DNA of 64,000 nt from Takakia lepidozioides (taxonomy: Eukaryota; Plantae; Bryophyta), in contig CM060732.1 in the NCBI GenBank assembly GCA_030704615.1, positions 57,908,001 to 57,972,000 on the forward strand, read 5' to 3'. The number at the start of each line of letters is the position of its first letter. The first letter of the stretch is position 1. The notes beneath the pieces were generated by a model, which was not told the origin of the DNA, did not search any database, and worked only from the letters and a program-made list of their open reading frames with translations. The translations under genes and the position numbers were made by a program. Of this stretch, positions 3,109-59,900 are shown piece by piece.

Positions 3109-3545
3109 TGTAACACCCAGGATTTACACAAACTAGAATAGAAGTACTTCTCAACTTTTTCCCAAAACAACTCGATGCCTTCTAGGCTTTCATTGCAGGT
3201 TTATATACCCTTCACAATATGATTATTTTAAAGGTTTGATTTGAGAGCCTCAAGTCAAAGCTTCCTAAAGTCAACCTTCCTAGATTTGGCATATTCTCCA
3301 CAATACGACTTTATCAAAGATACTTGCTAAAGTCAACCTTCATAGGTTTGACATATTCTCTACAATATGACTTTATCAAAGATTTGTCATACTCTCCATA
3401 ATATGAATATCTTAGAAATTTGACTTGAGAGCCTGAAGTCAAACTTCCTTAAGTCAAACTTCTTAGGATCCTTCCTAGTTATTCTAGAAACTTCTAGGGA
3501 ACTTTCCTCCTCCATCTAGAACCTTCTAGATTCTACCTTGTTACA
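3109..3545 (-). repeat. 3' LTR of the chromovirus
   Basis: Near-identical to 8714-9121 apart from small indels and substitutions. A polypurine tract (AACGAGGAGGAT on minus, 3546-3557) is adjacent. Confidence 0.95.
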
Positions 3546-6500
3546 ATCCTCCTCGTTGCTCGAATTTTCAAAAGCTCGAATTGCCAATTGAGCATTTGCG
3601 AGATTTTGCACCGGTTCCCAAGTAGCTTCATATAATGGAAATCCTTTCCATAAAACCAAATATTTCAACACCTCATGTCGCCCTCGTTTATATGTGCGTT
3701 TTTTCAGATTACGGTCGACCTCCCACTTTTCATTTCCGTCTATCAACTCTGGTAAAGGTTGTGGTTCTTTGATTATCTTTGAATATTGATGGTCGAGGTT
3801 CGTAACGACGTAGTAGAGAAACGTGAAACACCGGGTGGATCTTCATATGTGGTGGTAACTCCAGCTTGTATGCTACTGCTCTAATGCGTTTAATGATCGA
3901 AAAAAGATCAATGAACCGTACCCCTAGTTTTCGCGATCTAATGATGTGTAAATAAGTTGTAGACAACCACACTTGATCCCCAACTGCAAACTCCTCATCC
4001 CGTCGACGTGCATTTGCATACTGCTTTTGGTGATTTTGGGTAACCATCAGCTTCTCTTTAGCTTGACGTACTCCTCGTCGAATTTGTTGCACAAATGCGT
4101 TAGTCGCAGCTACCTTGGATAACTCATCTTTTGATAAATTGAACTTCGTAAGAGTTGTTGACACATTTGGGTGTTCACCATACATCAAAAAGAAAAGAGT
4201 TTATTTCGTTGACGCGTTGACCGAGTTATTGTATGAAAATTCTACCAATGGTAATAACTAATCCCATTCTTCTTGTTCTTCTAACGTAAAGGCCCGCAAT
4301 ATATCTTCAATTGTACGATTTGCTCGCTCTGTCTGTCTATCTGACTCCGGATGATAGGCTGTTGACATAGCTAATTTGGTTTTAAAAAAACCAAATAAGC
4401 TTTTCCAAAACAAGCTAGTAAATTGGGTACCCCTGTCAGTAATGAGAACTTTAGATAGCCCATGATGAGAATAGACCGTTTCCAGATATAGTCGAGCTAG
4501 TTCAGGTGCAGTGACGGATTTTCTAGTGGGACGGATGGGTATCATCTTACTCAATTTGTCTACAAAGACCACAATAGTGTCCTATCCCGATGAGGTTTGA
4601 GGTAACTCACAAACTAAATCTATGCTCATATGTTCCCAACGTCTGTTTGGTACTGGTAGTGGTTGTAAAAGACCTGCTGGCTTGCGGTTTGTTGATTTGT
4701 TTTGTTGACATCTCATGCAACTTCGAACGTACGCCTCCACCTCGTCTCGCATCCGCGGCCAATAAAATGTTCGTTTTAGTTGTTCGAATGTTTTTTCAAC
4801 TCCAACATGTCCTGCTATCGCCGTATCATGAGCTCCAAACAAGACTTATGTCTTCAATGCAGGATCATCAGGGATCCAAAGTTTACCTCCCTTGAATATC
4901 AACCCTCGAACTTCTATCACTATGCCTTTCTTTTTAGAGTCCACAATCTCCTCATCATCTTTAGAAGCCGTCGTTATCTTATTCCACCAATCGGGTTGAA
5001 TGTGGATTTCTGTCAATGTGTTCATGCGCGACATCCTTGTCATTGCATCTGCCAATTGCCGTTTTCCCTCCACATAGACGATCTTCATATTAAATTGTTG
5101 TCGTCACTCTGCCCAACGAATCTGTCTCTTCGATAGATCTTTTTGTGTCTCCAAGTACACCAACGGTTTATGGTCTATCTTCACTATGAACTCTTTGTCT
5201 CCAAGATAGTGCTTCCAATGTTTTGTACCCAAAACAATGGCCAATTCTTCTCGTTCGGTTGTATGGTAATTTTATTCCGCAGGTAACAATTTGCGAGAAA
5301 AATATGCCACTGGGTGTCATCCGTCTTCCCATTCTTGTTGTAATATTCCACCCACTGTTGAGCCTGACGCATCTACCGAGAGCTTGATTAGTCTTGTCGG
5401 ATCATACCATTTCAAGATCGAGGCATGAAGCAACGCATCCTTCAAGGCCTGAAATGCTAACTCCTCTTCTGTACCCCACTTCCATTTAATTCATTTGCCC
5501 AAAAGATTTGTCAATGGTTGGCAATCTTTGAGAATGCCCGTACAAATCGTCTGTAGAATCCGGTAAGGCCAAGAAAACTCCTTAATTAGGTAATGTCTTT
5601 AGGGGCTATCCACTGCTGAATAGCTTCTATTTTCTCACTCATTACCTCAATTCCCTTCCTACTCACGCGATGCCCAAGATAATCTACTTCTTGTTTTCCA
5701 AACTCACATTTAGATGCTTTGGCATATAGCTGATTCTCACGGAGAACTTGTAATACTTGTTTAAGGTGGTTTCTATGCTCGACAAGGCTGTTACTATAGA
5801 TCAAAATATCATCTAAAAAGACTATCACAAATCTCTCTAAGAATGGGTGAAAGATATCATTTATGAGGCCCATGAATGTGGCTGGAGCATTGGTGAGACC
5901 AAATGACATAACCATGTATTCAAAATGTCCATACCTAGTGCGGAAAGCGGTCTTATATACATCTTCATCAGCGACTCGAATTTGGTTGTATCCACTCCTC
6001 AGATCAAGCTTCGTAAAGTATTTTGCTCCGCGCAGTTGGTCAAATAGATCGTCCATGCGTGGTAACGGGTACTTGTTCTTCACTGTCTGCTAGTTGAGTG
6101 CTCGATAATCAATGCACATGCGCATTGCTCCATCTTTTGTCTTCACAAACAACACCGGCGCTCCATACGTGGATACACTTGGTCTTAGCCTTTTGATAGT
6201 AGGTCCTTGATTTGAGCCATATATTCTTCCAACTCGTTTGGTGTTAATCGATAAGGGACTTTACAAGAATGAGTACTACTTGGAATAATCTCAATCTTAT
6301 GATCTATTCTTCTATTTGGCGGAAGCCGTGCTGGTAGGTCATCTGGAAAGACATCTTTAAACTCTTTCAATACACTCCGTAATTCTATAGGGACCTCACT
6401 CATGTCTTTTTTTGGATTTTCCACGTCTCTTATTAAACCTATAAATAATAAGTCTTTCTTACATATAGCTGTAGTACCTATAACAAATGATGGTAGGTTT

Positions 6501-6900
6501 CGATATGGTGTTCTCACTCGATCTCCCCATATTTTCCAATTCTGGGTTTTGACTATCTTTCTACGCCAATCAACATCAGGGTTGTGAGATTCCATCCAAG
6601 GCATGCATAATATTACGTCATATCGAGCCAGTCTGACCACCCGCCATTCTAAGGTTTCTATATATTTACCAATCGACAACTCTATGTTTTTAGGTAGTGT
6701 CTCAATGGCCTCTGTATGTCCATTTGACATTTCTACTTCATCTCTTTTATCATTTTCTAAGGGGAGACATAGTTTCAAGGCAGCCTTTCTAGATAAGAAG
6801 TTTTATGTTGCCCCAGGGTCTATTAACACTCTCACATGAATACCTTCCAAGGTTCCATCTGCCACAATTAACTGCGTCTCTTTCTTGCCCGCATGATTGA
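3516..6900 (-). pseudogene. pol: Gypsy pol: protease, RT, RNase H, integrase and chromodomain
   Basis: Motifs include VLIDPGAT (~6810-6830), [13 protein letters not shown]...FLDDILIYS (5586-6083), HDTAIAGH...CMRCQ (4582-4842), TDRGTQF...TERAN (4258-4572), IHPVFHVSLL and YLVLWKGFPLYEATWEP (3516-3746, ending inside the 3' LTR). Multiple stops and frameshifts. Confidence 0.95.
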
Positions 6901-6959
6901 TTTGTCTCTTCTCCTTGTAGGGCCCATCGCCTCTCCTTTTCTTTGTAGATACAGTAAGA

Positions 6960-8055
6960 TCGCGAGGTCTACTTACTGGTTGTCCTCGTTTTTCTGCTCA
7001 TTGTGATGTTCGTTATCTTCGCCTCTCCTTAAACTGTTAAGAGGTTTTCGATAAGTTTGTCGATTGTACCTTCCACTTCGACAGTTGGCTGCAAGATGTC
7101 CGTATTTTCCACAGTTGTAACATTGTCGAGTTTCCATTTGTCATTCTGTTCGTGAGAATGTTGAGGAGGTCACATCCTTGTCATTCAATTTCATTCGCCG
7201 TTGTGTGTTATTTTCCCCATATCTGATTCCCAGCCTATTTCTTTGAGAGTATTGGAAGTTATCCCATCTTCGAAGATTTCCAAGCTCCATAGGCATTGGT
7301 CCGTATTGGTTCAATGGAACGTGTATACCTTCGTCGTATTTTGGTAGCGTCCCTTCAATCTTTTGGGCCAATGAAATTGCTTCGTGGACATCAACCGGGT
7401 TGCGTAAAATTACCTCTCCTTGAATTTTCTTCTTCAATCCTCTTTTGAAGTTGTCTAAAGCTTCTGCAGGACTCATATCTTCGATTTGGACCTGAAGATT
7501 CAAAAAATCTTCAATGTAATTTTGCACACTCCCGCGTTCTTCCAAGTTCCATAATTTCATTCGAGCAGTTGTAACAGCATCTACTGCCTTGAATTGTTGG
7601 AGCAGTCCCGCTTTCAAGGTGCTCCATAGTAAAAGTTCTCCTTTTGCAATCTGTCTTCTCTCCCATGTCTGTAACCATGTTGAAGCATTGTCGAGTAGAA
7701 AAGATCATATGAACATTCCGTATTCCAAATCACTTGATGTAGGGAAATATGACAGATGTACCTCCATTCGATAAATCCATCCTTCTAGCACTCCCATTGC
7801 GCGACTTCCTTTATACGGCTCGACCTTGCATGTCTTGGTCATCTTTTGCAGCAACGTATCCGACCCATCAGCAACCAGTCCCGGGGCGGTTGATTGTCTC
7901 ATTTGTTTAAGCTCCTCCATCAACACGTTGTTTTGTTGTTGGGTCGTGACAAGAGCATTCTGCAATTCGTGTAAACGCTCCATTATCCACACCGTCTGAT
8001 CATTGGCTTGATGAGTAGTGTGTGCGTTGTCCACTATTTCTTCATTGTCCGCCAT
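6960..8055 (-). pseudogene. gag: Gypsy gag with a CCHC zinc knuckle
   Basis: ORFs 7705-8055 and 7141-7617 (SVQNYIEDF, FKRGLK, GPMPMELG). QCYNCGKYGHLAANC at ~7081-7125 follows a stop. Confidence 0.9.
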
Positions 8056-8127
8056 CTTGCTCCACTACTCCTTCCTTCGTGGTGTTTGTTTTTTAAAATT
8101 AATGTATACTATCTCTATTTTCTTATC

Positions 8128-8343
8128 CTAATATAGTATGTAAATAGTGCAATCCCAAACCATCCCGTACGTGACTATTGGTAATACAAAAGGGACGTTT
8201 GAACTCATGACAAGGTTCATGAATTCTATCCCAAATTCTGCAACTAAAAATCTCACAAGATGATGCTTGTCGATAGCGTGCACATTGATATTAAATACAT
8301 TTGGCGGTGGAAAATTAGGCGGAAAATGTCTACCTCGATCCAT
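8128..8343 (-). CDS. Extra micro-ORF B (71 aa) in the chromovirus 5' leader
   Basis: Intact ATG-to-TAG ORF between the PBS and gag. It aligns with the adjacent micro-ORF A. Confidence 0.55.
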   Translation of the reverse strand: MDRGRHFPPNFPPPNVFNINVHAIDKHHLVRFLVAEFGIEFMNLVMSSNVPFVLPIVTYGMVWDCTIYILY

Positions 8344-8346
8344 GAG

Positions 8347-8548
8347 CTATGTATATACACGTATGTATACCTTCCAATTTTTAATTATAGGAAAAACGAC
8401 AGGTTGTGGATTTTGTAACACTTCTTGATATTGTTCCTCTCCAAATCTCTGTACTATCATCTCTCTAATTTCTGCTTTACGACGGCATATGATTTCAAAC
8501 TCACACTCCGAAGGAAAAATCACGGAAAGGGGGTTGATTTAAGTCCAT
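8347..8548 (-). pseudogene. Extra micro-ORF A (~66 aa, one frameshift in a homopolymer), paralogous to micro-ORF B
   Basis: Reads MDLNQPPFRD/FPSECEFEIICRRKAEIREMIVQRFGEEQYQEVLQNPQPVVFPIIKNWKVYIRVYT* if one base is removed near 8517. Confidence 0.5.
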
Positions 8549-8699
8549 AAAATTTGTATACTATCGTTATGGCGCACCATCACTACTATCTATTCAACAC
8601 TTAAAAATATTAACAACAAAAATCTCTAAAAAAAAAAAATACACATCTTAATCGAATCCTCTTAAAGAAGGTATTCACTCCCAACTTTAAGAAAGACTA

Positions 8700-8712
8700 G
8701 GCTCTGATACCA
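8700..8712 (-). other. Primer binding site for tRNA-iMet
   Basis: TGGTATCAGAGCC on the minus strand, 1 nt inside the 5' LTR end. Confidence 0.95.
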
Positions 8713-8713
8713 T

Positions 8714-9121
8714 TGTAACACCCAGGATCTACACAAACTAGAATAGAAGTACTTCTCAACTTTCGATGCCTTCTAGGCTTTCATTGCAGGTTTATATACC
8801 CTTCACAATATGATTATTTTAAAGGTTTGACTTGAGAGCCTCAAGTCAAAGCTTCCTAAAGTCAACCTTCCTAGGTTTGACATATTCTCCACAATACGAC
8901 TTTATCAAAGATACTTGCTAAAGTCAACCTTCATAGGTTTGACATATTCTTTACAATATGACTTTATCAATGATTTGTCCTACTTTCCATAATATGAATA
9001 TCTTAGAAGTTTGACTTGAGAGCCTGAAGTCAAACTTCTTAGGATCCTTCCTAGTTATTCTGGAAACTTCTAGGGAACTTTCCTCCTCCATCTAGAACCT
9101 TTTAGATTCTACCTTGTTACA
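8714..9121 (-). repeat. 5' LTR of the chromovirus
   Basis: TG...CA termini; matches 3109-3545. Confidence 0.95.
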
Positions 9122-9699: not shown

Positions 9700-12512
9700 C
9701 TACAAGCGACCTCGAACCACATTTAGTTCTCTCTGAGGTCGACTCCCACTCCGGTCTTGAATACCATCCAGGGTTTCTGGCCTGTTTGTGGACCGATCGC
9801 CTACAAAAGGTTGGACTGTTCTCTGTCGTTTATGAACTTGGGACGTAATCGAAGGTGGTACCGGAGGGGGGTCTGCCTGAGATGGACCGGCATTAGATGG
9901 TCCGGCATGTGAGGAACCACGGGTTTGCTGCGCAACACGTCGGTGAAGGTGGAATTGTAGTGGCAGGTTGTCATCATCCGAGGCTTCAACTTCCGCCCAA
10001 TCTAATGCAGCAGAATGATGCGTGCGTGTGGGAAACAGATCAACCCTGTTGCTTTTTAATGCCCGCTGTGTTGATGGGGAGCTGGATCGGTTTTGACATT
10101 GTGGTGGAACTGGTTGTATCGGTGAGGCATGATCCCGTCCCGTCGACTGTACAATAGGTTTGACACCATCGTTTGTATGAATAAGGTTGTGTACGTCGCT
10201 CGGTCCTGGAAGTTCATCACCCCTAAGCTCCATTGGGGCACTATCGGTGACTTCAGCGTGTAGTGGGGGAGCGAGGGTCGACCCCAACTTCATTTTGAGG
10301 ACTATGTTCTGGGGATGACATAATTGCAGCTTCACCTTCATCTGCGATACGCACTTCTTCAAGAAGGTCATCAAAAGTCGGCTAGATATAATCATCATCC
10401 TCTGTGAATGTAAACGGGTCATACGCATTTTCAGGAGCATCATCGGATCCATCTTCACTATCGGAGGCAGATGATTCCCTCTAAGGTGATTCACTCTGAG
10501 GCTCAGTATTGTCACTCGTCGAATCTACCTCAAAAGCAAAGTCTTCGGAATGCAAATTCTTCTCATACCATGCTGCAGCATTATCCACTGTCCTCTCATG
10601 TAGCAATCGGCAATTGGTATACACATACACCAATTTGTGAGCCCTTGCGGGATTCAACCTGTTGTGAACAAATGGGTAACTGCTCCAATTGCGTTCGCAA
10701 GATGAGGTAGAGCACACTTGAGCAAGAATACGTTTCGCAATGGAAGCCAATGTTCTTGCTCCAGCTCCAATCAGATCCCACCATTCATGTGGCAACATAT
10801 TGAACTCTTTTGGATCCGACATGTCCTCAAAATGGTCGCGGCGATTTGAGAAGCATTAGTACTCGGATATAATTCTCTCTGCATGGTTGGGCGGAGCCAA
10901 TCGCATGAGCACTCGCACGATGCCAGTCTTGGCATCAGCGTCGTCTCAAAGCATGTATTGTCGAGCAAGAATGGATTGAGCAAAGCCCCCGCATAATGCA
11001 AGTCCGTTCGAACCATCGAACGACGGTCGTAAAATGCATCCTCAGCATTGTCCGCAAGTTCAGATTCCAAATAGAAGAGATGATGCCTCAATGATTGGAC
11101 GTGCTTATCAAGATTTTGCATTAATAACCATGTCTTGCCCATTACTGGTTATTTTCCATCAAACTCCCGCAAGACGATTAACAGCGGCTCTACCATATAA
11201 ACAAAATTTTCACATTTATTCCAGAAATCATCGCTGCGAATGTTATTTCGAACTTTTCGACTTTTGCCCAATGACTTGGCTGTTCTGGAGTCCCACAATG
11301 TCCGTGTGTATGCATCCCATTGAGGATCGATGATGGTGTGCTCCAGACTGCTCTTCACCAACCGATCCACCATCAAGAAGTTAGTGGCGAAACGAGTTTC
11401 GCCTGGATTGCAGAGGCTGTATTTGGGTTTGTGCCTTCTATATATTGCCAAATGGATGTGATGTGTGCGGATGAATGACACAACAATATTCGCTCGCTTG
11501 ACAAGTCATTTCACCCACTGTTCTTTTCACCAATCTCCAAAAAAGAGGTCAAGGATATAAGCAGCACAACCTTCATAGTACAGATGGGGATAACGTGCCA
11601 ACAACATGTATGCAGTGTTTCCCATGTTAGCGGCATTGTCTGTGCATATTTGCACGATTCTATCATTTCCGACATGTTCGATGAAGTCCGTCAATAGCTG
11701 GCATTGATAATGTCCATCTTTCTTCTCGCCGCTAGTGTTGACCGATCCCAAGAATTGTTCCCCAGCTGGACATACGAGTATAACATTGAACAACGGTCTG
11801 TTTGTAACAGATCTCCAACCATCGACACATATAATGCTTTCATATTTTCTGATGCACTCGCCCGTCCTATCGTTGATCTTTTGGGTAAGCTCGGTCATGA
11901 CGTCTTCTAGCAATCATGTGCGGAGATTGTGATAAGTCAGAGGTACGTACGTAGATCTGGACTCCGAGGTTGCTCTAATGGCAAAAACAAATGCCGGAAG
12001 CATTGCCACATTAAATGGTATGTTGGCCTCGAAGAAAAACTACGTCTATTTTTTATCCAACTGTCTTTTCGCAGACAAGTTAAGACCTTCCTGCATGGAT
12101 TGCTGCCGTAATCCTCTATTCCGTTGAAGTGTAGGGGTACAAAGAGGTATTGAAGCAGGTGTTGCTCCGGCACAACCCACTTGTCCAAGGACACCCGAAG
12201 CCTCACAAAAGTCGCCCTGGGTACTAATCGGGGCATCCTGACGGGAAGATGAAGTGTTATGCTCAAAGGTCATGTCCGGATCCAAAGACATTGGAATATT
12301 GCCTCTACACTGGCAAAGTGGTTTTTTACCCACATAGATGCTTTAGGGCATAAACCCACCCCAGTGCTCTTCATACCTTTATAGCCGAGATGAGCGAGCA
12401 ACCGATCCTTACGATAAGAAAGCTTTTATCAACATAGGTTCCACTCAACACTATTAGTGGCACTGACAGTGTTCGGGATTGCTGTATACCAAGGGCTCCA
12501 TTCCTCCCTCAT
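9700..12512 (-). pseudogene. hAT-superfamily transposase: BED finger, DUF659/RNase H-like core, hAT dimerisation domain and low-complexity tail
   Basis: Degenerate BED finger (VEWNLC/DKSF...RLLAHL...GLCP, ~12340-12512). Core motifs ICVDGW, QICTDNAANM, GCAAYILDL, ETRFATNF and LHYAGALLNP, then PHEWW...STSSCERNWS...KLVYVYTN. Many frameshifts. Confidence 0.9.
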
Positions 12513-16489: not shown

Positions 16490-17035
16490 TGATCAATTTC
16501 AGCCCCTCAAATGAGCAATCCTAGATTATATAAATATTAATTTCAGCTGTTGAAATTGGCAATTCTAGCCCCCTAATGGCCATTCCAACCCTTGAAATTG
16601 ACAATTCCAACCCTCAATTGACAATTCAAACCTTTCAAATTGACAATTCCAACTCCTTAAATTGCAAAATCGACCCCTTGAAATTGACGATTCAAGCCCT
16701 TCAAATTGCAATTCCAACCTCTCAAATTACAAGTTGAGCCCTTTAAATTGGCAATTCCAGCCCCTTAAAATGCAATTCCAACCCCTGAAATTACAATTCC
16801 AGCCCCTCAAATTACAATTTCGGCCCTTGAAATTGCAATTCAGCCCTTGAAATTGGCAATTCCAACCTCTCAAATTACAATTTGAGCCCTTTGAATTGGT
16901 AATTCTAGCCCTTGGAATCGGCAATTGCAGCCCCTCAAATTGCACTTCCAGCCCTTGAAATTGGTAATTCCAGCCTCTCAAATTACAATTCAAGCCCTCT
17001 AAATTAGAAATTCCAACCCCTAAAATTGGAACTTC
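16490..17035. repeat. ~21-bp minisatellite (consensus approx. AAATTGCAATTCCAGCCCCTC), roughly 25 copies
   Basis: Degenerate tandem units are directly visible and produce the repetitive ORFs 16662-16850 and 16727-16993. Confidence 0.9.
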
Positions 17036-18020
17036 TTGCCCCTTCGAATTTTAACTCCCACTCCTAAATGGTGACCTGCTGATTTCGCCATACACTAGTG
17101 ATTATAGTGTATGGCGGCTTGAACATGCTTTATTTCACATGTTAAATTAAAAAAACAGAAGTACGAAAAAAACAGAAATAAATCAAATAATTTAATGAAA
17201 AAATGGAACTATGATATCAAATTATATAAAAATAAAAATAATAAAAATACAAAACCAATTTGATATGGAAAATCATCTTATTTCTTTTATCTTCATGGGC
17301 TATTTTTCGTATATTATATGAAAATATAGTTTAAAAAAGCATAGAAATATTTAGTATAATGACATATAATATTTCAATCTTTTCCTTCAAATTGTCATCT
17401 ATACATTTGATGTGAATGACATACATGTGTAACCTAATCCCATATGAGCTCTTGTTGTTCATTTTGCTTTGATTATCTCTTCTAAGTACTTGTCATCTCA
17501 ATGTTAGATGTTATTCTATCACAAATCTAAAACCATATTTTGTTTTTTGCTCCATTTGTGTAGTCTTCTAAATAACCCTCATTTCTTATGTACTATTATT
17601 TGCATCTTCTAAATATTTGTGATTTGAATATTAGATGTCACTCTACACTCATATATGGCACTCTAATCTCATTATTGATGGTGGATTGGAGTTAAAAAAA
17701 AATCCCTCTAGTAAGAAAAAAATCTATATACCCATACCCTTGCACATACCAGTACAACACTACCCTAAACAGTGAATCAACAATTTGAATATAAACAACA
17801 TAATTCAACTTCAATCTTTTACCCTAACACAAACCTTCAACCCTAAATCAACAATACCCTGGCACATACCCCCTAGTAAGAAAAACAAATCTATATGCCC
17901 ACACCCTAGCGCATATCCTAAACCCTAAATCAACAATTTGAACCTAAGCAATAGAATTCAGCTTCAAGCTTTTACAAATTACATGACTAAAGTCTAAATT
18001 ACAATGTCATTGTGAGTATA

Positions 18021-19255
18021 TCAAGAAATCCTTCCTGGATTCTCATTCAATTGGTTGGTACCTCTAGTCAATATCCATTTTTTGTTAACCAAAACCATCC
18101 CTAACCTATATTTTGTAGGAGATATAGATGAAGAAGAGAATAACAATGTTCCATGAGTTAATGTCTTGGAATGTGAAAAAATTGCAGATGTATTACTAGT
18201 CTCAAATTTATATAAATATTGATGAACCACAAACTCCCCTCCAACTGGAATTCCAGATTTAGTCCACATGATCATTGTGCAATCCGTATCTGTTGTATCC
18301 ACATGTGGTGAAAGAGGTGTAGACTTAGTCATGGATTGATGCATATGAATCTTTAAATCACAAACACCAATTCTAAGGCTATTTACGGGATGAATTTGAC
18401 TCTCAAAAGTATGAACCATTTGTGGTCCAATTTTTTTTTTCATTGCACCCCAGATACATGATGCAATACTATCACCCACCCCTCAAAAAAACAACCTCTT
18501 CATGAGTCGAAAGCTTGCTGTTAGTATACTTGGTGACTTTTTCAGCATTTGCCTCTCCTCCAATATTTGAATACCCATGACTTGTAGACTTGTCAGGGCC
18601 TCGAATACCATCTTTGTCACTTCTACCCACATGTGGTGTGGTCTCAAAATAAAGGTTACTCATATTTCTAAGAGTTTGACCTTCCATATCATTCATGATA
18701 TGTGGGATATATATGTGTTCCACCTCTCCAAAATCCAGTTCCTCCAAAGGGATAGGTGGGTCTGTACATAACAATATGTCTGCCTTCATAACCATGATAG
18801 ATTTTCTCACTGTATTAATCTCTGAACTCTGAAAGAGTATTCCCAACTTCCACTAATACTGGAATTTGTTGACCAATATGGTCTATTTTCTCCTTTTTTT
18901 GTCTACTTTGAATCTGAGTAAAAACAATGTGTACCTCTATTGTAATTGGCAATCCAAATTTCCTCAAAAGAGAAGTTGCTGGTGGGGAGCCAATAGAAAT
19001 AATACATTTGACCACCAACGACTGTGCATGCTTGTATATCTTCTTCAAATCTTGGTACTTTGTCGTAACGTTCAAAAAATCCTCTAAACATACAATACTT
19101 AGATCTTGTACTAATAATAGACCGAATAGGGATTTACAATGGTCCATTGGAGTACATGATGGTACAGAAATACATCTTGGACATCTATTTGACTCTATGC
19201 TTTTGACATAGGACTCACACAACTTTGTGGCAATTGACCCTCCATAAGTGTACAT
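18021..19255 (-). pseudogene. 2OG-Fe(II) dioxygenase, TET/JBP-like (copy 1, full C-terminus, frameshifted)
   Basis: Three overlapping ORFs (18815-19255, 18472-18846, 18021-18479). The last contains PHVD (HxD), GGEF, THGT (distal H) and YRLG (2OG-binding R) in double-stranded beta-helix (DSBH) spacing. Confidence 0.6.
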
Positions 19256-19368
19256 GGGCTAAGGGAATAACCCTAGTCCGAAACACAGTCTAAATGTTCA
19301 TTACTTTTATGACAGGGAATCACATGTAATATTTAAAGTATTTCGGACTAGGGTTGTTCCCTTAGCCC

Positions 19369-20727
19369 ATGTACACTTATGGAGGGGCAATTGCCACAAG
19401 TTGTGTGAGTCATGTGTCATAAGCATAGGGTCAAATAGATGTCCAAGATGTATTCCTATACCATCATGTACTCCAACGGACCATTGTAAATCCCTATTAG
19501 GTCTATTGTTAGTACAAGACCTAAGTATTGTATGTATAAAGGATTTTCTGAATGTTATGATACAATACCAAGATTTGAAGAGGTTTTACAAGTATGCAGT
19601 CACTATTTCTGGATATTTGGGATGGTTTGTACATGGTCTCCTCCTCGTCCTCTCCGTTCTGCTGGAGGTAGCCTGGTTGGAACAAATTAACCTTGAAAAA
19701 ACTGTGCAAGAAGCACACAATGCAGTTTGATATCCCAATCGCTACAGCGCAGCGCCGTATATGGTAAAAATCCAGCTCTTGGAATGCAAATCACCCCCGG
19801 AATTAGGCCTTACAACAATTTGAAAACAATTCATAGCCTGGTAGATGAATCCCATCCCCGCCTTCAATGTAAAAAACAACCTGAAGTTTGAAATAGTTGA
19901 GCAAATGTCTTAAACATTCCTATTGGCTCCCCACCAGCACCTTCTCTTTTGAGGAAATTTGGATTGCCAATTACAATGGAGGTACATATTGCTTTTACTT
20001 AGATTCAAAGTAGACAGAAAAGGGAAGAAAATAGACCATATTGGTCATCAAATTCCAACACTGGCAGAAGTTGGGAATCCACAATTCAGAGTTCAGAGAT
20101 TAATACAGTGAGAAAATCTATCATGGTTATGAAGGCAGACATATTGTTATGTATAGACCCACCTATCCCTTTGGAGGAACTGGATTTTGGAGAGGTGGAA
20201 CTCATATACATCCCACATATCATGAATGATATGGAAGGTCAAACTCTTAGAAATATGAATAACCTTTATTTTGAGACCACACCATATGTGGGTAGAAGTG
20301 ACAAAGATGGTATTTAAGGCCTTGACAAGTCGACGAGTCATGGGTATTCAAGTACTGGAGGAGAGGCAAATGCTGGAAAAGTCACCAAGTATACTAACAA
20401 TAAGCTTTTGACTAATGAAGAGGTTGCTTTTCGAGGGGCGGGTGATAGTATTGCATCATGTATATGGGGTGCAATGGGAACAAAAATTGGACCTCAAGTG
20501 GTTCATACTTTTGAGAGTCAAATTCATCCCGTAAATAGCCTTAGAATTGGTGTTTGTGATTTAAAGGTTCATATGCATCAATTACACGTGACTAAGTCTA
20601 CACCTCTTCCACCACATGTGGATACAACAGATATGGATTGCACAATGATCATGTGGACTAAATCTGGAATTCCAGTTGGAGGGGAGTTTGTGGTTCATCA
20701 ATATTTACATAAATTTGAGACTAATCA
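19369..20727 (+). pseudogene. Inverted second copy of the TET/JBP-like gene, truncated before the distal His
   Basis: ORFs 19401-19730, 20108-20317 and 20408-20800 match copy 1. It has a ~310-bp foreign segment at ~19600-19915 and a CGA>TAA stop at ~20315. Homology ends at ~20727. Confidence 0.85.
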
Positions 20728-20760
20728 TACACCTGTCATACATGGACCTCCAGACAAAAG

Positions 20761-21702
20761 CACTACAACAAAAATATGGATTTGTGACTGGGATTTATGA
20801 CTATTTTCTAGTCAGAAGACCCTCATGACTGACAGTCGTAAAACCCTGGTCGTAGAGCAACTGTAGTCACATGTACCTAACAGTCATAAGTCCCCATGAC
20901 TGACTGAAGACAAGTGATGTGTCATCTGAACGTGCTGACTGGAGGCTGACGTGTAGTTATATGTACCAACGTTGTCATGATTACAGACACCCACATGGAG
21001 GCCACGTGGCGAGGCGGCTGCATGCCACGTGTCCACATTTGACCCTATAGTCATAGTCATAGTCATATCAACGCTGTCATGACTACATACATCCGCGTGG
21101 AGGGCCTTGCCTGCTTGATACGTGTCCCCATTGACATTTGAAATTCAAATTTTGAATTTTAGTGGTTCAAAAATTTGAAATGTGCGTTGGCCGTTGACCA
21201 TTGACCCCACACCATCCCACACATTACTAAACAATACATTTGAACCTAAGACCGCCGCATTATAGCACTACTACGTCATTTTACACTAACCAACTCACCT
21301 ATGACACATACATGCATAGCATAAGTGGTTTGATTATATATAACCACAACAAACTTTGAAATATAAAGAGAGTGACATGTCTAGTCATAGTCATATATGT
21401 AGTCACAGTCATGTAATCATGTAGTAATACATGACTATGACATGTCATCCAATCATAGACATATGTACATAACACCTCATCATACCTAAGACTTACTCAT
21501 GACTGTTAGTCATATGTACCATGACATGTCATCACATCATAGACTTGCACACGACTGTCAGTCATATGTCCCGTCATGTGTTCGTCCAAGAAATATTTTA
21601 TTCATTTCTAACTGTATTCACGAAAGTGTAGTCATCCATTTAGTCAGATGTGCCATGACTACGGGAAAGCCACAGTCATGAAACCCAGCTTTTCTTGTAT
21701 TG
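20761..21702. mobile_element. Non-autonomous CACTA element
   Basis: Ends CACTACAACAAAA and TTTTCTTGTATTG, with a 3-bp TSD AAG (20758-20760 and 21703-21705) and dense ATGAC/GTCAT subterminal motifs. Confidence 0.85.
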
Positions 21703-35792: not shown

Positions 35793-38700
35793 CTAATCAA
35801 CTTGAACATCATCATCCGGAGCTTCTTCATCCTCATCAAGCTGTAAGTCTTCTTGGTCATCGGAGTCATCGTCATAAATGGTCCGGCCGTCAAAAGGCAC
35901 CTCCGAATCATCCTCCACCTCGTTGTCAATGGCCGTGTTTTCGTCTCCTTCTCCACCATCTGTATCTTCTAGAGCTTCATCATATATAGTCCGGGATGCA
36001 TTGTCCAGGGCGTCATCATCCTCTTCTACCCCCTCTACCCAACCTCCATCATCAGCATCATTATGACCAGTCTCTCCGTCCACCGCAATTGCCTCACCCC
36101 ATGGAGATCCAAGACCATGATAGATACGTCTTCATCTTGGCTGAGCATACACAATCACCTTCCAATTCCCCCCTCTTGTTTTGTCATCGGAGAAGAAAAC
36201 TTGCTCCATGTCTGAAGGCCGTGAAAAATGCTCATCGAAGGGACGATGAACAGGGTTGAGCCTATCTGCATTGACGCGCATAAAACCACAATCATCTTGC
36301 ACTAGTGTTGCGGAGGGCCCCACAAGATGTGGCTGGAACCACTTTCACTTGAAGAGAAGAGGCCGGTACCTTGTATACTGAAGTTGGAATATGCTCTCAA
36401 GCTCTCAAATGTACTCAAGTTTGCTCATAGTAGGTCGTATATCTCCCTGTCCCACACGGAGTCTTGCCAATATGTGGCACACAAGCCAGAATCAAAGGTT
36501 GTTTTGCGCTTCATATCAGAAGCACGAATGCGGAAATGACGACGGTGAACCCAAACCGCCGTGTATGAGGTCGTGAATTGAGAGGGACTCTTTGCAATGT
36601 CTTGCACCAAATCGGAAACCACCTCTCCTTGAGCAACGACATCATAAACTGAAGTTCAAAGCCACTATTGGAATGAACTTAGAGGCTGCAATTCCATGGG
36701 CAAATTTTGTGAAGGAACATTCCAGCGGCCCGCTCCTCGTCGTGGGCGTCTAGTAACCGGCCTTGGATGGTTCCGCCTCCATGCAAGCGTCTCCTCCTCT
36801 CGTTGCTGAACAAGATTATTGTATCTTGCCTCCCACTCATGTATGGATGGGGTGTTCTTCAGTATGAAGTCATGCGCTTGCTCAATCACCAAGGTCGACA
36901 ATTTTACCCTCTTCGATTTTTTGGGCAAAACGATGTCATTGGTTCGTGCATCCTCCTCTTCCTTCCACATCCGAGGGGCTTCCTCATCCACCCTTGCCAT
37001 GTACTCCGTGCAATAGAACATAGCTTCTTGCAACGTATACCCTTCCGCCATGCTACCCTCCGGGTGCGCCATTTGTCTTACAAATCCTTTGAAAGTCTTC
37101 ATATAACGCTCAAGGAAATACATCCACCGATAATGAATGGGGCCGGCAATCGAAGCCTCTTCCACTAAGTGCACTATCAAGTGCACTTGGATGTCAAAGA
37201 AGGAGGGAGAAAGGTGCATCTCCAACATACACATTGCCTCTGCCGCCTCCTTCTTCATTCGTGGAAAATCCGCTTCCTCCAACTCTTTGGAGCAAATGCA
37301 CCGGAACAAGCCTCCCAATCTATAGATTGTCTCACGAACCTCGGGAGTCAATATCCCACGTATGGCAATGGGCAAGATGTCTTGCAATAGATTGTGGTAA
37401 TCATGAAACTTCAAACCATGGACCCCGTCTTCTTCGCTGAACTTCGTACGGATGAATGACCCATAACCAGTTGGTGTTCGGACAGCACTTATGGTGGCTA
37501 TCACTTTCTTGTATTCATCCTTTGTCCATTGCCAAGGTGCGCGCCTATACTTCCACCGTACAACACCTTTTGGGTCCACACCATTTTGTTCGGCCTATAG
37601 ATGACGCATGTGACCCTGCTCCTCAAGCTCCTTTCTAACACCGAGAGAATCTCCTTTTGCAGCCACTCCCTTCTTTGCCGACGTGCCATGAAGAACCCAA
37701 AAAGGGACGAGCACATTCTTCTCAATATGCATGGGATCTAGAAGATGGCGAATCTTCAGGTCCTACATATATCCCCACCTACAAATACTTACACAAAAAA
37801 ATTTACGTGAAAATGACAATGCAACGCATACCAAATGTGCAATATTACATGCATGCATAAGGATATTGACGGTGTTTTTGTGGAATATGTACCGCCCAAT
37901 ATGACAACTCGTTAAAGATTGAAAGTCGTTTTATGCCGGGCGCGTCCACTTCACCGTCCGTGCCCGCATGGGCCTCATTCCATTAGTCCTCCCAAAACCG
38001 CCCGGACGGTGTCATAGGGGGGGGGGGGGGGGCATACTTCCTCTTTGCCATCAAACAAGTGTTTCTCTTCTTCTCCATCGATGGCTCATAGAAAGAAATT
38101 TGCGGTAGTTGGGATATACTATCTTGTGAAGATGGCGGGAGCTATGTGCATCAAGATCATCGCCACAATGCAAGCATACATGGTACCCTTTGGTGCTTAG
38201 CCCCGAGCAAACAGTTAGTTCTGTACTACACATCCCGCCATATTAGCAAAAACAAAAAGTTGTCATGTACATGCCCATAATGCAATCTACCCCACTATGG
38301 TGCACAAGACTGTTGCCGCTACTTCAATCAATCCCAATCCTCATCGATATTATCCGGCATTGACAAGTGAATGTACGCAGGTTGTTCATGGGGAACATAA
38401 TATACCTGGATAATCATGCATTGTCCAAAGCAAGATGTCTCTCATCTGAAAAGATTGTCCGACCATAGGGTCAAGTGAAGCATCCAATGCCGGGACCCCC
38501 CTCCATAGCTCCTTAAATTCATCAATAAGAGGTCGCAAGTACGTGTCCATGTTTGTCACTTGTTTTTTCCCTATGAGACATTCACATCATTATTTCAATG
38601 CTCCACCAATATGCAAATTATACTACAAAATGAATTACACGTCTTACTCCATGATTATGTCACTCATCAATTTTGCATCCGAATTGCGTCAGAGATCAGA

Positions 38701-53919: not shown

Positions 53920-56900
53920 ATGGCTCGCGCCAGACGCCGCGCTGCCAAGAGAAGCATTGAGAAAGGTGCGAGTTTCTATCCTACCTGAAATCGTAGGTAT
54001 AGGATTGTTGTAGTGGATTGTTGTGTGAGAGGGAGAGAGAGAGAGAGAGAGATCTGCGATAGGCTGGCTACGCTTGAGGCACGTTCCGCCAGGGATATCA
54101 ATTCTTCTCACTTTAGTCCGTCTTGTGTCGGAGGACGATGGTGGAAGTATGCAGTGGGTATGGGGATGTATTCATAAGAAGTTTGGCGGGGTTTTCGGAT
54201 CATAGATATACCTATCTCATATATCCGCTGGGTTACCAGCAAAATTCAGGTCTCATTTTAGTGTAGACCAAGTAGGTGATCTTCATCAGATGAGGAAGCC
54301 CGTTTCCTGGTAGCACAATACATGTGCTATGTTGTGATGCATTGGTCTGTGCGTGGAGCAGTGAGGAAGCTGATGGCTGACAACCTCGACGGTTCGAGTG
54401 ACCAGAATATAGACTCTGGAGAGGCCAACAACAGCAGCGATGGTCTGTCTCTCTTCCTCTCCCGTGGATGTTATACAGTTTCTTCCCATATTTCTATCTC
54501 GAATGTGTCCCATGGGCCTACGGCTGTCCCAGAGACTGCTAGAAATTATCTCGTTCTTCTATCTTTTGGATTGGAAAGGGAGGAACGCTATGGAAACTTA
54601 ATCAACTATCACAACAAATGCTGACTCTGGTGGGTTCAGCAACTCTTCTTCTGCTCCTTTTTAATCTGCCTGACATTGTTTCGCTTGCTTGTAACTTGTT
54701 TTCTTTTTAATTGCTGGACCTATGCAGATTCTGAAGATGAACTGGTGATCCAGCCAGCTAGGGTCAAAGGTTCAGCAAGAAAACGGGGTGCTGGGGTGGC
54801 CGACATGGTCTCATTGCCAGGTAAGGCCAAGAAACAGCAGAAATCCACCCACAACCAGCTGACACAGAGAAGGCACCAGATTGTCTCTTCAGACATTGAA
54901 TCGGAGACTGACAATTCGGATTATGAAGTTCCTGCTGACATTTCAGAAAGCAGTGAGAGTGGGAGTGATGGGGAATGCGCCCAGCAGAAAACACGGTGAG
55001 TTAGTTGGACTGTCACTAGGGTAATATTGAGTCTGTTTGATGTCTTTCTCAACTCACTGACCAGTCCCACAGCCCTGTTGCCTCTTGACCGTACTCAGTG
55101 TTGATGAAGTAATTCCTTGTGTATCACTTGATCAAATCACTGTCAACGTTCATTTGAGTCAAATGGTCTAAGGGCCCCAGTACACATAAGAATTTCAGTG
55201 TGCTGTTAGATGCAGTTAGAAGAAAGCCTACAAAAATTTGACTGCCAGGTTTGTGGACCCCTTGGTTCCGTGCAAGTGTGTCTTCTTTGGAGACAAGGTG
55301 TTCGGTGGAGAAACGAGGTCTATGTAAAATGATCGGAGGAAACCTACATTGCTGGAACTGTCACAGTCCTGTCTTATTACAGTTAACCAGTCTCCTCATG
55401 AACTGTGTATGAGCAAGTTAACCACCCAACCTTGAATTCTCATCTTGCTACTTGCTAAGGAGTACTCTCTAAGTCATATAGGCTGCCCCCGAGGATTTCC
55501 CTCCTTGCTCTGAGAATACCCTTTGGTATTCCCTCACTTGCTACTTGGCCTTTGCCATTCTGAGTGTTCACCTTCCCTTGCTTAGTCATAAGACTCTTCA
55601 GCTTCTGATATGTCCTACTATTTCTAGCCTTGCTTAGGCACTAAGCTAGGCTTGCTAACCTAGTCCATGACATTCTCTACCCTGCCAAGTCATTGTCCTC
55701 AATGACAAACTCTGGGTACTGCTGCTTCAATGTTTGCTCACACTACCAAGTGGCATTGGTAAGTGGAAGCTCATACCATGCAACCAAACACTCAGTGTGC
55801 TGTAAGATGCAATTAGAGGGAGAACATAAGCTTACAAAAACTTGACTGCCAGGTTTGGTGGACACCTTAGTTTCATGCAAGTGTCTTCTTTGGAGGCAAT
55901 GTGTTCAATGGAGATATGAGGCTATGTGAATATTAAGGGTTTGATCGGTGGAAACCTACATTTCTGGGACCCTCAGCAATGTGAATTTGCGGTTGGCAGA
56001 TGCTCCTGATGTTTTCCTCACATAGATTTCTGACATGCCTATTATCCTCCGGACTTTGTGGTCATGTGTTTGGCAGGCAAAGGGGTGCTCCCTGTAGTGC
56101 TTCCAATTCAGAAGAGAGTGAGGATCTGGACTTGGGCGCTACCACAGGCAGTGCAAACAAACTCGTGGTGAAGAAGAAAGCCACTGCAGCTGCCAGGAAA
56201 GCACAAGAGAAGAAAAGAAAGAAAGAAGGGAAGACGTGGTGGGGTAGCAGCAACAGAGTTGGATTGGGAAAGGTGGGAGCGCGAGCTGGAGGCCACTTGG
56301 GGGCCCTGGGGCGACAATGATGGTGAGATAGACATGGAGGACTTGGTGAAACGAAACCAGCTGCTTGAACAAAGAGAGCCTCCTCCTGAGCTTCTCATGC
56401 CATTGCTGCCGTTCCAGAAAGAGTGGCTGGCTTGGAGTTTAAAGCAGGAAAGTTCTGCCATGCGGGGAGGGATTCTGGCCGATGAAATGGGCATGGGGAA
56501 AACCATTCAAGCCATTTCACTGATTATTACCAGTCGTGCTGACCAGAGAATTGCGCAAACTCTGTCAAACAGAGACAAACAGTCAATTGACAAGTTTCCT
56601 CTCAGTGGAGGAATTGATCTGAATCTGAAGCCCCAGTTCAATGGGCTTAATGATGAGTCGAGATTGATAGCAGGGGCATCCACGTCATCAGGTCTGATTT
56701 CAAAACCTTCTTGTGAAGGTGAAGGAGAGTTGCCGCAGGTGAAGGCAACTCTTGTTGTCTGCCCATTGGTTGCCGTCATCCAATGGCGCAATGAGATTGC
56801 AAGGTTCACAGCAAGTGGAAGCACAAAAGTTCTTGTATACCATGGGCCCCGCCGAGGTATTGGGCTCACTGAGCTCTCCAAATACGACATTGTGCTGACA

Positions 56901-59900
56901 ACATATGCAATTGTGGAACAGGAGCACCGCAAGAACGTGATGCCACCTAAAGAGGCATGTAAGTGGTGCTCGAAGCTCTATTATCCAGACAGAATGGCTG
57001 TTCATCTACGTTTTTTCTGCGGGCCTGACGTGCGCAACAAGAAGCAAGCCAAACAGGTTAAGAAAAGTCCGCGCATGAGCAAAAGCTCGCTAGTGAAGGG
57101 GAAAGCTGATAGAAAGTTGAAGATGTCAGCTGTGCTGGGAGAAGAAGAATATGATTCTTCTGCTGTGGATAAAATGAAAGGGAAGGGCCGAGGCAGAGGA
57201 CTGGGAAGAGGTAGAGGAGAGGTAGGTTTTGCAAGGACAAAAGTTGGGTTGAGGATGAGATAGAAACTGCAGATGATTGTCTGAAAGGAGGGAGAGGTAG
57301 GGGCAGAGGGGGAGGAAGGGGAAGGGGCAGGGGAAGAGGAAGGAAGGTTGTTGCTGCTGAATTGGAAGAAGCTCTGGAGGAAGCTCTGGAAACAGTACAT
57401 GACTATGATGACAAGGGCATCTCAATCAAGGGAAACTCTGTATTGCATTCCGTGAAGTGGGCACGCATAATCTTGGATGAGGTGTGATTTCTTCTTGACT
57501 TCAGCCTAGCATGTAGTCTCCATGACAGGTTCTCGATGAATAATCACCTGTAATATGTGATAAGAGAGGGAAAACATTTTTGTATTTGTCTGTTAGACTT
57601 GTTCAGTGAGACAGGACAGGTTGCATGTGTTTAATGTCCTTGTTTTTTAAACAAGGAGGCCATTGGTCTCTTCGGAAGAGCTTGAATGGGCAACCTCTAT
57701 CTTGGGAATGGATGGTCTCTTGCAGTAGCTGAATGAAATTCATCGCCAAAAAACATACAATATAGTGGTAGGATAAAAGGATGTCAGGTTAGTGAAAGCT
57801 GGCCTGGGAATTGGTGAGGGAGACAACAGGCACATTCTATAAAGGACCGTCGATGCAGCACAGCAAAAGCAGTGTTTGCATTGAAGTCGCTGCATAAGTG
57901 GGCTCTCAGTGGCACTCCTTTGCAGAACAGAATGTTTGTTGTCTTTTTTGTGTTTCTTTTATAATTTTCTTTCATGGTTGGTTTGGTGTCTTACTCTTCT
58001 CCTCAATGATCTGTTGTTTTTGGATTTTTGGATTTTTCTCTTCTCCACTCCTTTTCCTTTGCTCTTGCCACTTCTGGGGTTTTTAATTAAATGCTACTTT
58101 GACATGATTGGTTGTTTTTGGCAGGTGCGGTTCCTGGAGATTTATCCCTACTCCTATTATTTCTGCAGAGCCTGCGATTGCAAGTCACTGGACTATCGGT
58201 AGCCCTTTTTCCTTGCTCATTTGTGCCAACAAGAACCCTTACCTTGAATATTCAGATTTGAACCAGCAGGCATCAACCAGTCTTACATGAAACAGACTAT
58301 CAGACCTTGCTTGTCACTGTCATGACACCAGATATATTGGATAGATACATCTAAGCAGGGGACCTCCCTGCTGGGTGTTGGCAGGTTCGGGAAGAACTGG
58401 AGAAAATGTGATGAATGCGGACACTCTCCACTGTACCATTTTTGCTGGTGGAACAAGGCATGTCCTCCCCTTTCCTTGTCTTCTGTCAGTAAATCAAATT
58501 CCTACTGTGTTCCTCAACAGTGCACATGGATTTCCTTGATTGTGTGTCTGGCATCAGAAGTTGTTAGACAATGAGAGATGTACATATTAGACTTACATGC
58601 CGTAGGCTTTTGGCCTCTAAAACCTGTGTTCGTCTGTTTTGGTGGGAGGAGGGGGTGGTAAAAGAGAGAGGTGCTAACAGTGTTGAGATGGGGCATGCAC
58701 TCGAGGCAGTTTATAGCAAATCCAATCAAGAAGTGGGGGTATGTGGATGAGGGACGGAAGGCAATGCTGCTACTGAAGTACAAGGTATTGGACAGCACTT
58801 TGCTTCGACGCACCAAGACAGAGCGTGCTGCCGACCTTGCCCTTCCACCGAGAACTGTGAGTTTCTACCTTGTGTCTTTAGATTATTTGTTCAATATCTT
58901 CCTTTGCCACATCGATTACTGTATGTCGTTCTCTGCTTGTGTGTCTATATTCACTGTGGCAAACATGAAGTACATTATTCTGATCAACTGATTCACAGAT
59001 TGCCCATGCAATCTCTGTTGTTGGTATTTAGCGCACCGTGCATTAGCTTTAGGATATTTTTATGCTTAGTAATCCCTAAAGGGCTGCAACTTTATTCACC
59101 TCAGACTGCAAAATCTGCACCTCTGGCCACCCTTCTAGTCATAACTAAAAACATGCACAGATCTACACAACTAGACCGTTGAACCATGTTCCTAACTGCA
59201 TCCCCTACCTTCACCTAAACTTTCATGGCATTTTTCCCTCGGAATTGGAATCTTGTAACTTTTTTGTGAGCATATAACGTTTTTCCAACATTTGCAGCGC
59301 AGGAAAACAATTCACAAATCTGTTCAAAATTCCTACATGGCTAAGCCAATTGAAATCAGACTCTACAGGAACATGCCTCATGATGTTGGCCACCTTATAC
59401 TACTTTTTCAGAGTTTTTGGACAAGATGTTGGTGTCCAGAACTGCATTTTCTGCACTTTTTGCCACCTTGGTTTTGGGTAAATTTGGGTGTGTTGTGTGG
59501 AAAACTGGACGACCCTAATGTTGTCAATCAAGTATGGAAGGTCCTCGTAAATTTTTTGTTGACTATTTTGTTATAATACCTCCAATTTGCTCGGCTCCTT
59601 TGTTTCTTAGGGCTTATCCAGTGGCCACCCCTCTGAAGATGGGGTCACCCCTGCCAGTCACCCCTCTGGGACAACGAGCCCCACCCCAGCCGTGCAGAGG
59701 GCTGGACCCTCAACACCCCCTCCCTTATCTGCAGGTACCCGCCAGCCCTGCCAAACGGGCAGCAGGCAAGGCATATCCAGGGTCAATCTGCCCGCATGTC
59801 ATGATTTTGGTTGCAAAAGTCGTCTTAACTTTCTGCCATCAGCACCAATGGGCCTCAGGCAGGTGCCATTGGAAAGCCCTTGTGCCGGGCTACATTATAG

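Follow-up and report, generated by a model that had tools for sequence, protein, structure and literature searches.

Structure of the locus

The window analyzed here is a stretch of 64,000 nucleotides from Takakia lepidozioides (assembly GCA_030704615.1, contig CM060732.1, positions 57,908,001 to 57,972,000 of the forward strand; all positions given below are those of the window). It contains a decayed gene for a TET/JBP dioxygenase, related to the 5-methylcytosine-modifying enzyme 1 (CMD1) of Chlamydomonas reinhardtii, and an inverted second copy of the same gene; these are named copy A and copy B in the following. An initial annotation of this DNA had described a decayed, apparently intronless gene at 18021-19255, with mention of a second copy, and had proposed that it encoded a TET/JBP-like 2-oxoglutarate (2OG) and Fe(II) dioxygenase, borne by a transposable element (TE) and possibly acting as an anti-silencing factor. 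The features that make up the locus are:

18021..19255, minus strand: copy A, the whole CMD1-like TET/JBP pseudogene, 5'-truncated with respect to the 556-residue homologue P0040 and with two frameshifts
18815..19255, minus strand: N-terminal piece of copy A, with several Cys; corresponds to P0040 residues 137-230 (32% identity, E 4e-8)
18472..18846, minus strand: middle piece of copy A, with GRSDKDGIRG...SHGY; N-terminal half of the catalytic domain, P0040 residues 270-368
18021..18479, minus strand: C-terminal piece of copy A (152 residues), double-stranded beta-helix core; P0040 residues 383-529
19401..20735, plus strand: copy B, inverted duplicate of copy A, with stop codons, 1-bp indels, an insertion and a 3' truncation
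19599..19915, plus strand: segment of about 317 bp inserted into copy B, without counterpart in copy A
19225..19399, no strand: centre of the palindrome, with 62-nt arms (19225-19286 and 19338-19399) and a 51-nt loop

Copy A is one decayed gene spread over three reading frames. The listing of open reading frames (ORFs) contains exactly three for it, all on the minus strand and overlapping, and the two frameshifts lie near 18835 and near 18491. Along a single metagenomic homologue, P0040, the three pieces align collinearly, and since the gaps between them are too short to accommodate introns, copy A is intronless. This agreed with the initial annotation, and so did the sequence motifs: the HxD...H...R set, the GRSDKDGIRG...HGY segment and the Cys-containing N-terminus were all found in the three ORFs. 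No Pfam family matched the N-terminal piece. The C-terminal piece carries the series PHVD...GGEF...THGT...YRLG...VNK, in which the metal ligands are encoded at 18305-18303 (His59), 18299-18297 (Asp61) and 18155-18153 (His109, in THGT), and two further residues of interest at 18266-18264 (Trp72) and 18107-18105 (Arg125, in YRLG). Copy A has kept all catalytic residues for which an alignment was possible.

The second copy also proved to be real. Copies A and B are arranged head-to-head in a palindrome centred near 19312, with arms that are 91.8% identical (Kimura two-parameter distance 0.088; transitions to transversions, 66:24). Copy B reads in a single frame but with in-frame stop codons, TAG at 20000-20002 (CAG in copy A) and TAA at 20315-20317 (CGA in copy A), and it also carries 1-bp indels. 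It ends at 20735, whereby the second His and the Arg of the motif set are lost. Its insertion showed a read depth two to three times the local level and is probably a small non-autonomous repeated element; when inspected, no clear terminal inverted repeat (TIR) or target-site duplication (TSD) was found in it. A retained intron was also considered for this insertion and rejected, since removal from GT to AG would delete conserved residues. Likewise, an assembly artefact was rejected as the origin of the palindrome on the basis of difference-free contigs across the junction in two independent studies: contigs of a DNA run cover 18946-19450 with zero differences, and a run from a different study covers 19173-19404, again with zero differences.

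Both copies are pseudogenes and are dead at present. They decayed largely by transitions, C-to-T changes having generated both stop codons of copy B, and the observed/expected ratio of CpG in the locus is 0.25. This arm divergence and CpG depletion form the pattern expected of DNA that has presumably been methylated for long and decayed neutrally. Between the first and the second pieces the arms differ at two 1-bp positions, and these disturb the frame whichever arm is taken as ancestral; from this we infer that the unit had probably become a pseudogene before its duplication. Taken as a whole, the locus is very probably a head-to-head duplication of an already damaged, 5'-truncated CMD1-like TET/JBP gene.

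Assignment to the TET/JBP family

In order to assign the gene to a family, the pieces of copy A were searched separately, and the intact natural homologue P0040 was folded for the full domain. A phmmer search of the 152-residue C-terminal piece against 1.84 billion representative proteins returned 37 matches, about 29 of which are true relatives; these are in the main unnamed fragments, found in metagenomes and run assemblies. The best of them had an E-value of 1.9e-24 at 40% identity, and since this was reached among 1.84 billion proteins, the homology is far beyond chance. Eight matches composed of multiple stretches (P0008, P0009 and others) were discarded; the two of them that were scanned are WD40/nSTAND1 proteins in which short stretches had been summed, and the remaining ones were left out on this pattern alone. 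A word-indexed protein search gave zero matches with P0040 and five proteins with the family alignment, and no usable match came from an ESM-Atlas feature search with the Cys-rich N-terminal region of P0040.

Among solved proteins, CMD1 (PDB 7cy4-7cy8) alone was matched by sequence. Using the C-terminal piece alone, it was the sole PDB match (E 0.0034), and using a profile of 31 family sequences it was found at E 1e-11, with no other relevant protein appearing even at E 10. The profile alignment pairs the HxD motif, the second His, Asp350 and Trp358 of CMD1 with their counterparts in the family.

Structural comparisons pointed in the same direction. The AlphaFold model of the C-terminal piece of copy A (predicted local distance difference test, pLDDT, 78.6) shows eight core strands, with a predicted double-stranded beta-helix (DSBH, cupin-like) core. 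CMD1 occupied Foldseek ranks 1-5 for this model (root-mean-square deviation 1.8 Å over 88 columns), followed by CcTet and NgTET1, and all structural neighbours were DSBH proteins, cupins or 2OG oxygenases. For the catalytic domain of the intact homologue (P0040:255-556; pLDDT 60.5, predicted template modelling score 0.62), Foldseek ranks 1-26 were all TET/JBP proteins, and VIA-align, which is independent of Foldseek, placed TET2, NgTET1, CMD1 and CcTet at ranks 1-4; applied to the 152-residue piece, VIA-align did not separate the 2OG from the cupin families. Among the language-model feature neighbours in the ESM-Atlas, 26 of 30 were Tet_JBP clusters, and the structural neighbours in the Atlas were Tet_JBP or Tet-like as well. 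Foldseek thus returned neither a 2OG oxygenase acting on substrates other than nucleic acids as best match nor a fold different from DSBH, the two outcomes that the initial annotation had regarded as contrary to its TET/JBP assignment.

The residues with known roles in CMD1 were then located in the window protein by hidden Markov model (HMM) alignments, window residues being numbered along the C-terminal piece of copy A. His59, Asp61 and His109 align to the Fe(II) ligands His345, Asp347 and His397 of CMD1, and Asp64 to Asp350, which binds N4 of 5-methylcytosine (5mC) (PMC7854593). Trp72, which lies 13 residues past the first His and is conserved at 90% or more in the 31-sequence alignment, aligns to CMD1 Trp358, a residue that touches vitamin C and fills the site where Arg1896 of TET2 holds the C5-carboxylate of 2OG (PMC7854593). 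At the positions of Thr337, Ile356, Phe371 and Thr399, which form the vitamin-C pocket of CMD1 (PMC7854593), identical or like residues are present in the window protein or in the family. The DNA-contact loop Lys264-Tyr270-Arg275 of CMD1 (PMC7854593) is aligned with the middle piece, at the family motif S-x-S-H-G-Y. HxD-x2-D-x7-W and H-G-T...R-x-G are spaced as in CMD1 and TET. Equivalents of CMD1 His249 and Ser414 were not found in the alignment. The co-substrate may be ascorbate and not the 2OG of the initial annotation, given that the equivalent of CMD1 Trp358 is conserved.

The HMM alignment to CMD1 ends before the last strand, and this strand was mapped by spacing alone. Known enzymes have here an Arg (TET2 Arg1896, NgTET1 Arg289, CMD1 Arg410), followed by an aromatic residue at +6 and a His or Arg at +8 holding the flipped base. 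By this mapping Arg125, 16 residues past the second His, lies in a strand R-L-G-x-x-x-V-N-K, its position being occupied by R, K or T among relatives, and Lys133 takes the position of CMD1 Arg418.

A number of observations weigh against the assignment. Pfam, including Tet_JBP (PF12851), gave no match, with cut-offs of E 1 for the window pieces and E 5 for P0040, which indicates a divergent clade outside the reach of that model, membership resting on the profile and the structures. The model of P0040:255-556 is of modest quality. The stacking aromatic residue (CMD1 Phe416, TET2 Tyr1902) appears to be Val131, judging from the spacing, and no equivalent of the N-terminal Arg involved in co-substrate binding and base stacking (CMD1 Arg244, TET2 Arg1261) was located by alignment: an R-G that is conserved in the family falls beside CMD1 Gly263, not on Arg244. 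If the resemblance to TET/JBP reflected a common fold only, the gene would belong to some other family of 2OG/Fe(II) oxygenases, such as prolyl 4-hydroxylases or AlkB. We regard this as highly improbable, because CMD1 is the only significant sequence match in the PDB, the top ranks of both Foldseek and VIA-align for the full domain are held by TET/JBP proteins, the motif spacing is that of CMD1 and TET, and the DNA-contact loop of CMD1 is aligned. These results indicated that the gene is that of a TET/JBP dioxygenase of a divergent CMD1-like clade and not of another 2OG-oxygenase family, as had been proposed by eye in the initial annotation.

Genomic surroundings and origin of the copies

The features that surround the locus in the window are:

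3172-9038: long terminal repeat (LTR) retrotransposon, with 276-bp direct repeats (3172-3447 and 8763-9038, 97% identical) and a reverse-transcriptase ORF at 5589-6083 on the minus strand
10484-11913, minus strand: decayed pieces of a hAT transposase, with DUF659 (11530-11913) and the hAT dimerisation domain (10484-10822)
16540-17043: minisatellite of about 24 units of 21 bp, with a higher-order spacing of 42-43 bp, directly left of the locus
from about 20850: high-copy repeat, according to read depth
22032-22460, plus strand: fragment of a pentatricopeptide-repeat (PPR) ORF with a weak match to the Transposase-associated domain, 1.3 kb right of copy B
36668-37579, minus strand: CACTA/EnSpm-type DUF4218 ORF (E 1e-34)

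According to the initial annotation, the gene is flanked only by repeats. This is roughly right, as shown by the minisatellite and the high-copy repeat, but the PPR fragment and the hAT remnants have to be added. The latter share the strand of copy A and lie 6-8 kb from the locus, beyond the minisatellite, and no link between them and the TET-like locus could be demonstrated. No transposase adjoins the locus, the decayed hAT being the nearest one, so that the earlier remark that no cognate transposase is visible beside the gene still stands. No TIR, TSD or LTR pair encloses the locus either, and the sole long repeats around it are the two gene arms. Read depth was about 30x, the local single-copy level, across 17500-20850, and 100-500x further right; this single-copy depth excludes a high-copy element at 90% identity or more. 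Transposon carriage, as put forward in the initial annotation, is consequently not supported at this locus, while it may apply to the CMD1-like family.

Relatives of the gene provide some information on this last point. In two contigs of one metagenome (L001 and L003), a TET-like gene is part of a unit of at least 9 kb that is repeated at 96% identity and includes an rve-type integrase, and we consider this unit a candidate TET-carrying integrase-type transposon. The contigs are AT-rich and eukaryotic, and a TET-like ORF (P0002/P0038) together with a split rve-type integrase gene (Pfam rva_4) is found at L001:9633-18519 and L003:9831-16705. The unit and the window share the TET-like gene only. 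A distant member of the family, P0029 (366 residues), is encoded in a densely packed 16-kb contig (ENA ERZ27292242) that also contains an intein-containing gene and genes for RNase HII, a pectate-lyase-like protein and a polysaccharide pyruvyl transferase; this contig looks like that of a giant virus. As to the host, the PPR, DUF4218, DUF659/hAT and Transposase-associated domains encoded in the window point to a land plant. Far from the locus, the window contains a SNF2/RAD16-like ORF (56259-57260, plus strand) that has its best named relatives in Sphagnum fallax and S. magellanicum, with 58% identity to the representative of their cluster as compared with 42-47% to angiosperm proteins, which hints at a non-seed plant.

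Other accounts of the two copies were also considered. The gene might have arrived as cargo of a DNA transposon, in a family that protects or protected its carrier from silencing by methylation; this concerns the origin of the gene and is compatible with a duplicated pseudogene at the locus. It would fit the repeated unit with rve-type integrase shared by the longer relatives L001 and L003, the many relatives that are degenerate fragments, as decaying repeats would be, and the richness of the window in TEs (LTR retrotransposons, hAT, CACTA), and it has a precedent in fungi, where TET/JBP genes are carried by KDZ, Plavaka, hAT7, IS3EU, EnSpm and Helitron transposons (Kojima 2025, PMC12730594). 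However, the locus lacks an enclosing TIR, TSD or LTR pair, the closest transposase remnant is separated from it by the minisatellite, the window holds no other sequence similar to the L001/L003 element, and the depth is single-copy. We thus view the cargo origin as a real possibility, but lean slightly against it.

A retro-copied (processed) pseudogene of a spliced host gene, duplicated afterwards in inverted orientation, would account for a unit that is 5'-truncated and, in the part equivalent to P0040 residues 137-529, free of introns. Nevertheless, the 1 kb that follows the stop codon contains no poly(A) tract, and P0040 is also one uninterrupted ORF, so that absence of introns may be the norm for the family in this region; such an origin is unlikely. 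Finally, the retention in copy A of all alignable catalytic residues could suggest that one copy still works and is expressed as an anti-silencing enzyme, the active role envisaged in the initial annotation. Against this, copy A has two frameshifts and no room for introns that would bypass them, copy B has stop codons and an insertion and has lost its second His, and no contig of two runs guessed to be RNA was found on the locus, although this is weak evidence of silence, given that only contigs were compared and the RNA label is uncertain. There is next to no chance that a copy is functional, and the duplication of an already damaged gene stays as our preferred explanation.

Predicted activity and comparison with known systems

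By analogy with CMD1, an intact member of the family would hold Fe(II) with its His-x-Asp...His ligands on the double-stranded beta-helix, and would modify the methyl group of a 5-methylpyrimidine that it has flipped out of the DNA duplex. Homology gives ascorbate and 2OG about equal chances of being the co-substrate, with some inclination towards ascorbate: a CMD1-type use of it is favoured because the equivalent of CMD1 Trp358 and other residues of the vitamin-C pocket are conserved. The copies present in the window are relics of this CMD1-like family in an apparently non-seed land plant, decaying in CpG-depleted, presumably methylated and repeat-rich DNA. There is a small but appreciable chance that intact paralogues are active ascorbate-dependent enzymes of the CMD1 type, which convert 5mC into a glyceryl-type or oxidised base and which are, or derive from, anti-silencing cargo of transposons. 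If this were true, land plants would have a second route for removal or masking of 5mC, beside the ROS1/DME glycosylases. The conserved Trp that would block 2OG leads to a testable prediction, namely dependence on ascorbate and formation of a base like 5-glycerylmethylcytosine (5gmC). The locus itself is functionless, and its value lies in the evidence that it provides of the spread and decay of the family.

To our knowledge, land plants are generally described as being without TET/JBP enzymes and as removing 5mC only by means of ROS1/DME glycosylases. The CMD1-like relic reported here shows that the family is or was present in a land-plant lineage. Reviews confine CMD1-like proteins to green algae and close relatives (PMC11066809, PMC11065753). 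In the literature on mosses, ferns and embryophytes we found no report of a TET/JBP protein in a land plant, a search that did not cover the Iyer/Aravind surveys of 2009 and 2014, which might list a bryophyte member.

Among characterized enzymes, CMD1 is the closest to the window protein, and it also ranks first in Foldseek for the window piece. Nevertheless, their cores share no more than about 26% identity, the N-terminal region of the plant family is Cys-rich and unlike that of CMD1, and the copies of the window are pseudogenes; the two distinctive traits of CMD1, formation of 5gmC and use of vitamin C, are only predicted for the plant family. There are also differences with TET1-3, NgTET1 and CcTet, which are 2OG-dependent 5mC oxidases. 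None of these was matched by sequence in the PDB at E up to 10, and PF12851 was not matched; a Trp sits where the C5-carboxylate of 2OG needs free space; and the CXXC domain, the Cys-rich TET domain and the large insert are absent.

With the transposon-encoded TET/JBP genes of fungi, the locus has in common that it belongs to a multi-copy and often degenerate kind of gene located in TE-rich DNA, and the unit with rve-type integrase of L001 and L003 is reminiscent of fungal TET-positive elements of the IS3EU type. In contrast to them, its host is a land plant, no complete element, TIR or TSD was delimited around it, it has no linked transposase, and it is single-copy at 90% identity or more. 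Its protein also differs from the fungal PU, AG and PE types, in that it appears to belong to a CMD1-like clade, as judged from similarity and not from a phylogeny.

The comparison with the 5mC DNA glycosylases ROS1/DME of angiosperms is indirect, as the host is apparently a non-seed plant. The common ground would be to act on 5mC in DNA, with the potential to counter silencing. As HhH-GPD glycosylases, ROS1/DME excise the base; the plant TET/JBP family would instead modify the methyl group oxidatively, by means of an unrelated fold and chemistry.
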